A DNA stretch of 62,977 bases, filler included, from Hyphochytrium catenoides (taxonomy: Eukaryota; Protista; Hyphochytriomycota), in assembly GCA_900088475.1 (NCBI GenBank). It is 16 parts of 16 records of this genome, joined end to end, with 100 filler letters (N's around TTAATTAATTAA, not from the genome) between each part and the next. Parts side by side here need not be neighbours in the genome. Positions count along the whole stretch, not along the records: positions 2,564 to 6,497 come from FLMG01003482.1; 15 more parts are not named here. One strand, 5' to 3'. Made by a program: the position numbers and the translations under genes. Under the pieces are notes generated by a model. That model was not told the origin of the DNA, did not search any database, and saw only the letters and a list, made by a program, of their open reading frames with translations. Shown here in pieces: positions 2,564 through 6,597 of the stretch. Within the stretch, counting starts at the first letter, position 1. Every line of letters starts with the position of its first letter.

Positions 2564-5500
2564 ATGGCGAGGTAGACGGGTTTGCCAAATAGGACCCCGA
2601 GGACGACGGAGGTGTTCAGCATGATAAAGATGGACATCAGGATGAACTGCTCGTTGGGGTGGAAGTTCATAAAGGTAAGGAAGATTAGCAGCGCGCCCAG
2701 GAAGCTCGTATTATATATCGCAAAGCCAATCTGCCTGCTCTCATTGAAGCGCTGGAAGCGGCCTCCCACATCTTTGACCCGGAAGCAGAGCAGAGAGCCC
2801 CAGAGTAGCATTAAACCTTCCAACACCACTATTCCCCATGGGCCCCAGCTGTATGTCGAAGAACAGCCTTCATACCGGCTAGGATCTCTGTCATCAGTGA
2901 AATACTCCCTCATCCTAGGTCCGTCTACGCCAGTCCAGACGGCGAGATAGGTCAAAAAGAAGACCAAGATGCCTGCGAAGAAGGCCATGACCTCTGCGTC
3001 CGTGATCAAAAGCTTCACCAGCTTCTTGTTATTAAATATCATCGCCACGCGCCGCGTCTTTGCAAAAAGCGGACCGAAGATGAAGCAGAAGGAGAGATGC
3101 CCGATCCAAGGCTGTGCCATGCAGACAGTGTGGGTTGGGATCGGATAAAGGGTAAAAACCGTGGCAAAGCAGAGAATGGCCCCAAAGCAGGTGACCATGC
3201 TGAAGCGGAACCCACCCCGGAGAAGGATATACTCGCGGTGGTAGGTTAGGACTGCCATCAGTATGACAGCCATAAGAGTATGGATCCCCGCCAGAATAAC
3301 AATGGCCAGCCGGGCACCATTCAGTTGGAAGTCCACATTGTGCAGCACGGTAGCCCCGCATAACCCGAAAGAGAGACGGTCATCCAACGCTGGAAGATCA
3401 TACAGCGAACCGTTACCCGCGATTCCAGTTAGCCAGACTCGCTTCATGCACTGATTGCAGCCCGGACGAGGAAGAGATGCAGTTGCGTCGTCTGCATTGT
3501 CAAAGGGGCCGCACTGTAGGCCGCCGAATGAAAAGGTTCCTGAGTCATAGAAGGCGTCAATGAGCTTCTCGCGGCTGTCGAAGGCTCCTGCCAGCCTTTG
3601 CAGGCCACTGATCAACATTCTGGCCGTTAAGTAGCCCTCGAGAGCTGCAGCCGACTTCGGAAGGGTTTTGTCCAGGCTGTCCATCGCGCTCCTAAAGTCT
3701 TTCACAGCCTTGAGGCCCGCTGCGTCGTTGGGTAGAGGAACCACTCGAGGGACGATAACCCGCTCTGCTGCCAGCTGCAGCGATATGCCCGCCGCGGTCG
3801 CAAGCCGGAAGAGATGCGACTGCATCTCCTCTACCCCTACTGAAGATAGAGTTAAGTACCACATCCCGTCGGACCTCTTCTTCCCTTCCAAAACTAGCCC
3901 AGCCACGACCTCCGGCGGGCCTACTAGTAGCACAGCCTCGGGTGCGCCATCTCTGTCGCTTCTCAGTGCTGCTAACAAACTTTCGCCTGCGATATCCCCC
4001 TGGGCAATGTCCATTGTGGATTCTGAAAAGATCTCGAGGCGCCGGGATGAAAGAGCGCTTCCCAGTAAGGTCCTAGCCTCTCGGCCAGCAGTGTCATCTG
4101 AGTAGATAATGGAGACTTTGGTGACTTGGTAATCCAGGTAGAGATAATTGATCAAACCAGCCAACTCATCAAATTGAGATGCTCTAAAGCTGATGGCGTG
4201 ACGCTGGAATGGCTGGCGTAGCGACATGGCGCCTGACGGTGAGCCGATAAAGGGAAGGTCGGCTGCCAATGCTGCTTCAAATGCGGCTTGCGTGCTTGCA
4301 ATGCCTACCGAAGAGCCTATGATAGCGAGGATCTCTGGATCGCTGGCTAGCGCTTGGATGTTGCTGTGGGCCAGCTCAGGGTTGTTCTGGTCGTCCCTAG
4401 AGACCAGGGCGAGCTTGATGCCCAGCAGGCCGCCCTTGTCATTTACTTCTTGAAATGCAGCACGGATTCCCGCGTTGAAGGAGAGACCTATTGCTGAAGA
4501 ATCGTCCGCGGGCTGCTTGGGGAGCGACTGCCCGAACTTGATGAACTGCCAAACCTTTGCGCGGTAGCCACAGCTGTCAAACTCCAGGCTCTCTTGGTCC
4601 TTCATTAGGCCGTAGGACCCATCTGGGTTTATGGTGGTGAAGGTAATCCTCCGCATGCAGATGTTGCAGCCGCCCTTCACGTCCCGAGGGAGGTAGGGTC
4701 CACATCGCAGCCCATTGAAGTTGAAATTTCCGCTTTCATAGATTGCGTCCAGCAGCATCTCGCGGGTGAAGGAACGGGAGCCGATGCGCCGTATTGCCTG
4801 AACGATAAGTCGCCCGTTAAGATAGGCCTCAAAGGACAAAAAGTCGTAAGGCTGTCCCGGACTGGAAGCGTTAATGGCAGCTTGATAGCGAGCGACGATG
4901 GGTAGCGAGGCATTCGACGGCAAAGGGACAATCTGCGTAATGACAATGTTCTTCACTATGGCGTGGGGTGGCTCCGTGCGGCTGAGGATGAGATCTCGGA
5001 AGGAGTCTGTTACCGCAGAGATAGCAAGGTACATGGTCCCTTCAGGCAGTATCTTCATTGCTTCAAGGATAAAGAGGGCACTAGGGTTGGACAGCCCGGC
5101 TAGGATGACGGCCTGAGGCTTTGTTTCTCCTCCGCTAATTGCCGCAAGAGCCGCTGTAATATTCTCACTACCACGAGCGTAGCGCCCTTCGCTGTGCAGC
5201 CGTAGATTGTTGGAGTCCAAAGCCAGCACTACGCCCTGAAGGCAAACTTCTCCGAAGGAATCATTCTGAAGGAAGATAGCGATTCTGCTGAATTTTCTGA
5301 CATTGATCAGATATTCGACCATGGCCGCCGCTTCATCCATGTAGGACGGTCTGAAGTTTACAATCTGCTTGTTGAAGGGTGAGCGAAGGAAGGGTGCGCC
5401 CGTGAAAGTTCCGATCAACGGATAGCCTGCGGCCAACACAATGGGCATTGCGGCTTCCACAGTCGCGGTGCCCACCCAGCCTACCATTGCGAAGATCTCG

Positions 5501-5862
5501 TTGGTTCTGTTAGTGAGCTCCCTTGCGTACGCTACAGACTTGCTGGGATCGTACTGATCGTTGTAGGTTTCCAACTCGAGATGGAGGCCCTCCAACTCAT
5601 TGTTAACATTCGCCTCGTGGAATGCTGCAGCAAAGCCCGCGCGAGTTGATTTGCCGAGCTGCTGCGCGCTGCCATTGATTACCGCAGACTGGGCAAACTT
5701 GATTGTAGCAGTGGCACCGCACACTGTCGTCCCAAAGGTCGTTTGGGCGGCCGCCTCTAACGTAGCTTGCGGGTTTAGAAGTACGACGGCTGCCCCCAGC
5801 AGAAGCGAGACTGCTAATAACATCTTGTCAGTAGCGACAAGGACCCCACGTTCTTGATGCAA
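2564..5862 (-). CDS. Class C (GABA-B-like) GPCR: signal peptide, two tandem type-I periplasmic-binding (Venus flytrap) domains, 7TM; C-tail truncated by contig end
   Basis: Single open frame of about 1100 aa with a hydrophobic leader MLLAVSLLLGAAVVLL. It has two LivK/Peripla_BP_6-like repeats (IKFAQS..AGFAAAFHEAN..NDQYDP..FRPSYMDE..QNDSFG / IKFGQS..AGIRAAFQEVN..DDQNNP..FRASQFDE..SDDTAG). The 7tm_3 motifs GPLFAKTRRVAMIF (TM3), FNESRQIGFAIYN (ICL3/TM6) and VLFGKPVY (TM7) follow. Confidence 0.9.
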
Positions 5863-6597
5863 AACGTGATATGCTGCTCTTCCGTGCTTGTAGGCACTCT
5901 TGTCGTCAGCAGAAAGTAGGTGACTGGCTGAAACTCCTTCTCATGAATAGCCGGGCTACCCCTGAGAACCACCACTCTGCTGCGTGAAAGCGCAAAAGAG
6001 GTCGAAGCTAGAGTACCATCCACTCTTCTTGCTTTCCCGAAGAGCTGTGAAGCCTGCATGCGCAGCGCGCACTGCCATTGACAAAGAACTTTGCTCAGGT
6101 TATTTGTTAGCGGCGTGAAGTGGGAGAGCGTAACATCAACTGAAGCCGCAGTGGTCCGGGCCGGAGGCTCTGGGATTCTTTATTACCTAGCTTAATGGCA
6201 ATAATAGGGAGGAGCAAGGAGGATGGTGATCGACCATGGCGGTAGCAGCCCGACACAGGACAGTGGTGGGTGGTAGAGGTTAGCACTTAGCATCCCACAG
6301 ATCGCGCATGCTGTATAAGAAAAAAGAAAATAAAACGGAGTGCAAGGCTCCGGCTTGTGGACTGCCATTCTCGAACCTACTACTTAATTGAATAGTCTTC
6401 TTCGCGGTGATGGGTGGGGCGCAAGAGGTTTGCACCAAGCTGCGAAAGTCTTCTCCTTTTCCGTACTCCTCTTTCCCTTCCCAGCCCTCACGGCAGTNNN
6501 NNNNNNNNNNNNNNNNNNNNNNNNNNNNNNNNNNNNNNNNNTTAATTAATTAANNNNNNNNNNNNNNNNNNNNNNNNNNNNNNNNNNNNNNNNNNNN

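Follow-up and report, generated by a model that had tools for sequence, protein, structure and literature searches.

Two LivK-type flytraps in series on a class C seven-helix domain in Hyphochytrium catenoides

The window, a stretch of 62,977 nucleotides (filler included) joined from 16 records of the Hyphochytrium catenoides assembly GCA_900088475.1, holds in its piece from FLMG01003482.1 (2564-6497) a gene for a G-protein-coupled receptor (GPCR) of class C in which two Venus flytrap (VFT) domains stand in series ahead of a seven-transmembrane (7TM) domain. The gene is genuine, intact, and eukaryotic, and is intronless as far as seen. That this tandem-flytrap architecture is real and originated by duplication is, as a joint claim, almost certain. 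The whole best explanation, a blend of architecture and mechanism in which an outer flytrap (VFT1) would sense a small solute and an inner flytrap (VFT2) would mainly pass the movement on, is probable; its parts are graded separately below.

Gene model and assembly support

The receptor is encoded in a single long frame on the minus strand, stop-free over 1086 codons from the ATG at 5823 to 2566 (table 1). There is also an in-frame TTG at 5862 with a stop upstream, and the whole open frame is 1099 codons. The frame runs off the edge of the piece (2564) just past the seventh transmembrane helix (TM7; other helices are named likewise) and the 3' end is absent from the piece. A stop at 2512 in the open reading frame (ORF) listing is inside the linker between parts and is not genomic.

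Pfam assigns Peripla_BP_6 to two stretches (1e-60, 206.7 bits vs. a cut-off of 31.7) and 7tm_3 to residues 838-1080 (1.8e-38, 133.1 bits vs. a cut-off of 33.5; profile positions 8-249 of 251). ANF_receptor is weaker (1.2e-21), and a partial Peripla_BP_A-cyclase match (34.5 bits) involves both flytrap units. NCD3G has no Pfam match in the receptor at E <= 0.01. In an AlphaFold2 model, for which 53 sequences were aligned, the mean predicted local distance difference test score (pLDDT) is 89.8 and the predicted TM-score is 0.64. The model has two bilobed alpha/beta units, seven long helices, and, in the second extracellular loop (ECL2), a beta-hairpin. At its N-terminus, a helix (2-15) is followed by a disordered stretch of low pLDDT (19-36). 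The original prediction, made from the same DNA, had described one frame with a signal peptide, two flytraps, and a 7TM domain; ORF, Pfam, and model bear this out, and its domain coordinates agree with the unit borders to within the short Cys tails, a few dozen bases. The 7tm_3 match in the C-terminal region was a check that had been set beforehand.

An independent contig of another sample encodes a protein, P0001, that is 47% identical over residues 25-1085 and has an identical layout in one intronless ORF. It continues for ~64 further residues after TM7, corresponding to a cytoplasmic tail missing from the H. catenoides copy.

The locus is present in three DNA runs (X1, X2, and X3), all of one study. 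Record 3 of X1 spans 3664-5873 and bridges the joint between VFT1 and VFT2, and record 14 of X2 spans 3626-6497. At the joint between VFT2 and the 7TM domain (~3321), DNA contigs cross as the original prediction had called for (X2 record 10, 3270-3597; X3 record 16, 3058-3304). No joints or loose ends were reported in the contigs that tile the piece. Among runs, the coding sequence (CDS) has 17 variant sites spread over all domains: 12 synonymous ones and five nonsynonymous ones, the latter in four codons; all four sites in the 7TM domain are silent. The pattern is that expected where purifying selection acts on a gene across all three domains.

An artefact, whether a chimeric assembly, two adjacent genes mistaken for one, or a pseudogene, is very improbable. 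It could draw on the evidence for the locus being DNA only and from runs of one study, on breaks in Logan contigs near 3277-3308 and 3590-3664, and on a 1-nt deletion at 4026 that would frameshift VFT2. But the breaks are bridged by contigs of other runs, a 1099-codon open frame is far above chance, variation among runs is mostly synonymous, and P0001 and several transcript-derived homologs have the identical architecture. The deletion is confined to one X3 contig of depth 3.2 and is read as a probable assembly error because contigs of depth 391 and 23 do not have it.

Table 1. Features of the receptor piece, in window positions.
Feature	Position	Strand	Residues	Basis or remark
Receptor CDS	2566..5823	-		1086 codons from ATG; cytoplasmic tail and stop codon cut by piece edge
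Probable signal peptide	5743..5823	-	1-27	Hydrophobic core then Ala-rich stretch, from translation
Flytrap unit 1 (VFT1), membrane-distal, Peripla_BP_6 / LivK type	4528..5703	-	41-432	Pfam, PDB, Foldseek
Cys tail 1 (Cys 374/386/389/418)	4570..4704	-	374-418	Beta-hairpin extension; connects unit 1 with unit 2 at its first strand
Flytrap unit 2 (VFT2), membrane-proximal, diverged paralog of unit 1	3322..4527	-	433-834	33% identity, E 3e-51
Cys tail 2 (Cys 771/789/792/822)	3358..3513	-	771-822	Joins unit 2 to TM1
Class C seven-helix domain, complete through TM7	2566..3321	-	835-1086	7tm_3 1.8e-38; GABA-B2 4.9e-19; model
5' flank, presumably promoter and 5' untranslated region	5824..6497	.		Only feature is an 81-codon ORF in another frame

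Inspection of ORFs revealed no convincing gene in the 634 bases upstream of the receptor frame. The 81-codon ORF there starts with ATG and lies on the minus strand (6059-5814); it ends 9 bases within the start of the receptor ORF and may be a chance or an upstream ORF. One X2 contig has a 7-nt insertion (TGGGGGC) behind 6384 in the upstream noncoding region.

Kinship, duplication, and spread of the flytraps

Both flytraps had been predicted to be nearer to bacterial LivK-type proteins than to those of animal class C receptors, and the searches show them to be much nearer. Compared to PDB sequences, VFT1 matches 4kv7 at 7.6e-42 and animal flytraps are absent among the hits. In Foldseek, the TM-score is 0.89 to 4kv7 (root-mean-square deviation, rmsd, 2.5) and 3lop and 0.86 to 4m88, versus ~16% identity to GABA-B chains. 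A shape search of the ESM Atlas with the full model returned single-domain bacterial matches only (0.86-0.87).

Gene neighborhoods suggest what these bacterial relatives do. We considered five of the closest free-standing ones, which are 35-40% identical to VFT1. The gene for P0045 and the start of a HAMP-HisKA-HATPase kinase gene overlap, and that for P0049 is followed by a kinase gene whose product has a TorS sensor domain; both binding-protein genes are behind a partner-switching set of response regulator, SpoIIE, and HATPase_c_2. P0041 is encoded by the second of two tandem binding-protein genes, followed by a HAMP-MCP chemoreceptor, and P0063 by a gene that precedes a Cache protein and an MCP. 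The neighborhood of P0054 has no obvious partner gene. Thus sensor kinases or chemoreceptors are in four of five neighborhoods, and ABC permease or ATPase genes are beside the binding-protein gene in none of the five. Such an arrangement recalls TorT/TorS and LuxP/LuxQ, where a membrane transducer is the docking site of a binding protein. Judging from these neighborhoods, the closest bacterial clade is one already devoted to signaling, and LivK-like is correct as a family label. The backbone of our careful tree (see below) is a polytomy, so that the bacterial clade may be a sister group of the eukaryotic units, nested among them, or their donor.

Three bacterial loci are worth describing in their own right. 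In L004:6438-11398, a tandem pair of paralogous LivK-like genes is immediately upstream of a HAMP-MCP chemoreceptor gene, a case of two flytraps and one transducer in trans. In L006:2310-8479 and L002:6401-11415, the binding-protein gene is between a response-regulator/SpoIIE(PP2C)/HATPase_c_2 set and a HAMP histidine kinase. L006 also has a STAS protein upstream, and its HAMP kinase carries the TorS sensor domain. The arrangement of L006 and L002 looks like a conserved sensory operon.

Units 1 (41-432) and 2 (433-834) of the receptor align end to end, tails included, with 33% identity (E 3e-51). On sequence, VFT1 and VFT2 are paralogs from a tandem duplication of a whole unit, comprising a flytrap and its tail with four cysteines. 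The original prediction of two diverged flytraps in cis stands in that both are present and have diverged, but they are related to each other by duplication and are not two captured bacterial genes. Capture of two separate bacterial genes was considered and rejected: no bacterial protein is as close to either unit as they are to each other, and the Cys tail common to both, of eukaryote type, also contradicts it.

Each tail is ~45-50 residues long and builds on the final beta-hairpin of the bacterial fold. Relatives that are free bacterial proteins have an N-Q motif at this position and lack the cysteines and a ~25-residue extension. C386, C418, C789, and C822 are invariant across eight multi-flytrap receptors. 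Only ~8 residues lie between C418 and the first strand of unit 2, and ~12 between C822 and TM1. The tails are probably short disulfide-stapled connectors at both force-transmitting positions, and they may fill the role of NCD3G. The absence of a cysteine-rich domain, as originally described, is therefore correct for NCD3G, but each flytrap does carry a four-Cys tail.

Additional cysteines and one variant concern these regions. Residues 28-35 (5719-5742) read T-F-G-x-x-x-C-G, ~6 residues ahead of the first strand of VFT1, and resemble the S-F-G-L-C-G end of Cys tail 2. P0001 has a Cys at a matching distance before the first strand of its VFT1. Either the first Cys of each unit belongs structurally to the following unit, or the stretch is a remnant of an earlier unit. 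VFT1 has a further cysteine, Cys194. In run X2, two adjacent changes at 3455-3456 (codon 790) replace Asn790 with Gly and turn GCNQCM into GCGQCM in Cys tail 2. Asn790 is within the near-universal C-N-Q motif, and codon 790 is the only variant that hits a motif conserved family-wide.

In a careful maximum-likelihood (ML) tree of 42 flytrap units, the unit 1 pair and the unit 2 pair of the H. catenoides protein and P0001 are each strongly supported and together form one clade (99/98). The cysteine pattern xCGP...GCNxCM is found in both units of these two proteins and in no other units, providing independent support for their joint placement. Because the two pairs share one clade, the duplication predates the split of H. 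catenoides from the organism of P0001. In the same tree, it comes after the two organisms' divergence from every other lineage sampled. However, the approximately unbiased (AU) test does not reject one older duplication (delta lnL 15.6, p 0.23), in which the inner units of the H. catenoides protein, P0001, Ceratiomyxa, and Clastostelium form one clade. Repeated independent duplication is favored, not proven. Units 1 and 3 of the Paulinella proteins group together and apart from unit 2, which points to further duplications there.

An ancient shared duplication, as suggested by a quick tree of 72 units in which VFT1 and VFT2 of H. catenoides are apart, was dropped. A constrained search was better by 34 lnL and its best topology unites the four units of H. 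catenoides and P0001; the careful tree confirmed this.

Related representatives in an exhaustive HMMER search numbered 8046, and 393 had E <= 1e-30. Our census covers the best 150 of the 8046 and is a lower bound; it includes at least 10 clusters at 50% identity with two or three flytraps and a 7TM domain. Multiple flytraps precede a 7TM domain in P0001, P0009, and P0013 from Logan and P0027 from ENA. They precede 7tm_3 in transcripts of Ceratiomyxa fruticulosa (P0007), Clastostelium recurvatum (P0019), and Amoeba proteus (P0047), and in the chytrid Lobulomyces angularis (P0106). Two transcript-derived Paulinella proteins (P0003 and P0004) have three flytraps and 7tm_3. The cluster of P0106 has a member from Clydaea vesicula that UniRef names 'G-protein coupled receptors family 3 profile domain-containing protein'. 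A word-indexed protein search was insensitive: it returned nothing with the whole protein, P0001 only with the VFT1 region, and P0001, P0019, and P0163 only with an 8-sequence profile.

As these proteins show, the design of two to three flytraps with 7tm_3 is not unique to this genome and extends to Amoebozoa, Paulinella, and chytrid fungi. The suggestion of an independently assembled receptor class thus fails, given relatives with one, two, or three flytraps and 7tm_3 in several eukaryotic supergroups.

Related arrays are also fused to other outputs. P0016 of the euglenid Rhabdomonas costata has four flytrap units and a guanylate/adenylate cyclase, P0014 has two units with Ephrin_rec_like and a TRP-like region, and P0163 combines the flytrap family with a protein kinase and a cyclase. 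Ephrin_rec_like stalks occur on the flytrap arrays of P0010, P0012, P0023, and Cafeteria P0006. In P0002 and P0005, which have six to seven units, no membrane output was found. Given these differing fusions, the flytrap array is a portable sensory module that protists have combined with various outputs by shuffling, and fusion to 7tm_3 is one recurrent use of it. P0002 (3020 aa) and P0005 (2821 aa) have their LivK-type flytraps in series without a Cys tail, and P0002 has a Metallophos domain at its N-terminus. In the quick tree, their units are within the bacterial clade on a long branch.

Signal output and division of labor

The best solved relatives of the 7TM domain are GABA-B2 chains (4.9e-19), followed by mGluR7/8 and GPR179 (~1e-11 to 1e-12). 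In the model, the seven helices are within residues 835-1085 and the strands of ECL2 are at 970-975 and 982-988. C901 in TM3 and C987 in ECL2 align with GABA-B2 cysteines and are invariant in eight relatives. FAKT and FNESRQIG..YN align with FAKT and LNDSKYIG of GABA-B2, with the Lys and Glu kept. The Lys of TM3 and the acidic residue of TM6 form the ionic lock of class C receptors, the latter within the motif that runs from the third intracellular loop (ICL3) into TM6. Foldseek aligns whole GABA-B subunits to a flytrap and the 7TM domain over ~735 columns at an rmsd of ~20 Å, meaning that domain orientation in the monomer model is different or uncertain. The 7TM domain had been called GABA-B-like, which the GABA-B2 match upholds. 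By these alignments it is nearest to GB2 though distant, and the receptor is not filed as a GABA-B receptor.

The two flytraps have diverged unequally. Conservation of >=85% among the 15 nearest free-standing relatives from bacteria defined 80 alignment columns for the count. The outer unit keeps more of these columns than the inner unit in the H. catenoides protein (59 vs. 47), P0001 (73 vs. 45), P0007 (72 vs. 42), and P0019 (59 vs. 30). Inner units also have longer branches in the careful tree, and VFT2 has lost several positions conserved in sensing relatives. We compared clefts at S79, T102, Y150, and Y18 of Escherichia coli LivJ, which we take to be ligand contacts. Positions were mapped by a weak HMMER alignment (E 3.5e-06) limited to the domain's first half, with VFT2 residues taken from the unit alignment. 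S79 corresponds to T119 in VFT1 and I508 in VFT2, T102 to G142 (T141 adjacent) and G531 (S530 adjacent), and Y150 to F190 and A579; Y18 corresponds to L56 of VFT1. Nevertheless, VFT2 has a high-pLDDT fold and most scaffold motifs, and shares with its P0001 counterpart a pattern of its own (xPSGxMSLRxPF, LSSVG, and ALEG[YF]). Motifs and model together indicate that VFT2 is not decaying.

In the mechanism we propose, the signal peptide would place both flytraps outside the cell. VFT1, retaining the signature of bacterial sensor-coupled proteins, would close on a small solute. VFT2, with a cleft that is remodeled yet constrained, would mainly relay or modulate, and could possibly be a second, different sensor. 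The two Cys-stapled connectors would transmit the movement rigidly, in place of the cysteine-rich domain of mGluR and CaSR. The 7TM domain, probably in a dimer as in all studied class C receptors, would then activate a heterotrimeric G protein. In BvgS, mobile distal and closed proximal flytraps in tandem jointly set the state of the transmembrane helices (PMC4352136), and this distal/proximal division of labor is the nearest working analogy for the serial flytraps here. A sensor (VFT1) plus relay (VFT2) arrangement has in our judgment slightly less than an even chance of being right.

Alternatively, as the original prediction had suggested, the receptor may integrate two ligands, with flytraps that bind different small molecules and a 7TM domain that responds to their combination, as coincidence or as agonist plus allosteric modulator. 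The well-predicted fold and retained motifs of VFT2, its own pattern in common with P0001, and its mostly silent variation among runs are all consistent with this, and its altered cleft positions suit a new specificity equally well as a loss of binding. But VFT2 has Ile at the equivalent of LivJ S79, presumably a ligand contact, and the inner unit is the more diverged in every double-flytrap receptor compared, which suits a structural relay. We consider two-ligand integration unlikely, and less probable than the division into sensor and relay.

Several points count against the proposed mechanism or parts of it. The TM7 sequence is FGKPVY (2566-2600) in place of the usual FxPKxY, and in P0001 it is FGRSLL with the motif gone, though more distant relatives such as P0027 and P0009 retain the P-K pair. 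Canonical activation can therefore not be taken for granted. We found in the literature no ligand for 4kv7, the closest solved relative, or for 3lop. The LivJ positions are presumed ligand contacts, and the alignment of LivJ to the receptor is weak and partial. No RNA run was found for the organism, the locus being known from DNA runs, and the receptor C-terminus is cut off. The timing of the duplication, given the AU test, belongs here as well.

The altered TM7 motif could also mean that a ligand is sensed without the usual G-protein coupling and that the 7TM domain is an anchor, scaffold, or transceptor. The homologous arrays on cyclase (P0016), TRP-like (P0014), Ephrin_rec_like, and kinase plus cyclase (P0163) partners, which make the sensing module portable, would fit such an output. 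Conversely, the 7tm_3 score is strong, the Lys of TM3, Glu of TM6, TM3-ECL2 cysteines, and ICL3/TM6 motif are kept, and the four 7TM variant sites are all silent. A noncanonical output is thus improbable, and we retain G-protein activation as the predicted output.

Significance and comparison with known systems

To our knowledge, in every class C GPCR whose mechanism has been worked out, each chain has one flytrap and these pair side by side in a dimer. On a more speculative reading, a flytrap akin to the bacterial binding proteins that couple to sensors would have been tandem-duplicated more than once, and a single chain would have gained two nonequivalent flytraps, which GABA-B and T1R receptors get by heterodimerizing. 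This would permit two-input or sensor-plus-relay logic. Two nonequivalent flytraps in series, with short putative Cys staples, would test the reach and rigidity with which closure is transmitted to a 7TM domain. The family links class C receptors of eukaryotes to receptor cyclases and to bacterial binding proteins that form a sensor-type clade, and bears on the origins of eukaryotic flytrap receptors. Amoebae, Paulinella, chytrids, and this protist have almost no characterized chemoreceptors, so a tractable ligand-binding domain would be useful.

The architecture had been described as uncharacterized, and our literature search yielded no paper describing the design. Sequences with this design are already in public databases as proteins without specific names. 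The reviews and surveys consulted on how GPCRs evolved list ANF, Bmp, OpuAC, and Ephrin_rec_like as well as 'species-specific configurations' on 7tm_3, and do not describe a class C 7TM domain with a series of two or more flytraps (PMC3971589; PMC12716839; PMC10445921). Literature found by phrase for tandem, double, or two flytraps was confined to BvgS/EvgS, CdgH, the cyclases of trypanosomes, and dimeric receptors of animals. That serial flytrap arrays on a class C 7TM domain are a recurrent protist receptor design, undescribed in the literature found, is a tentative and rather doubtful generalization.

Among the closest comparisons, the uncharacterized proteins of Ceratiomyxa, Clastostelium, Amoeba proteus, Paulinella, and Lobulomyces-Clydaea likewise have two or three flytraps of the same family followed by 7tm_3, but are only 26-32% identical to the H. 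catenoides receptor. In the ML tree, their duplications look separate from that of its lineage, whereas the AU test leaves a shared origin open. Other protist class C receptors (P0024, P0048, P0050, P0097, Cantina marsupialis P0028/P0038, and diatom clusters) share a LivK-type flytrap with tail and 7tm_3, but have one recognizable flytrap per chain.

Tandem flytraps in series before a membrane transducer are also found in BvgS and EvgS. Unlike the H. catenoides receptor, these are bacterial and have a histidine kinase output, and their flytraps are of another class of binding protein, the SBP_bac_3 type. The binding proteins of the 4kv7 clade are like VFT1 in fold, 35-40% identical, and encoded beside HAMP kinases or chemoreceptors. 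However, they are free in the periplasm, are without a Cys tail, and act in trans on a transducer. Trypanosomatid receptor adenylate cyclases, the nearest precedent among eukaryotes, are surface receptors that likewise have two extracellular flytraps, whose role is unknown (PMC6027212). Their output is one transmembrane helix and a cyclase, not a 7TM domain.

Among animal receptors, mGluR, CaSR, and T1R share 7tm_3 (E ~1e-12) and a disulfide-rich connector, putative here, between flytrap and 7TM domain. Their connector is the NCD3G with nine cysteines, behind a single ANF-type flytrap, whereas here it is a four-Cys tail and NCD3G is absent. GABA-B (GB1/GB2) is the best match for the 7TM domain and has in common with it the TM3-ECL2 cysteines, the Lys of FAKT, the N-E/D-S...IG...YN motif, and the lack of NCD3G. 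It differs in its TM7 motif and is ~16% identical. Each GABA-B chain has one ANF-type flytrap and two different flytraps are brought together by heterodimerizing, whereas the H. catenoides receptor has two LivK-type flytraps in series, each with a four-Cys tail.

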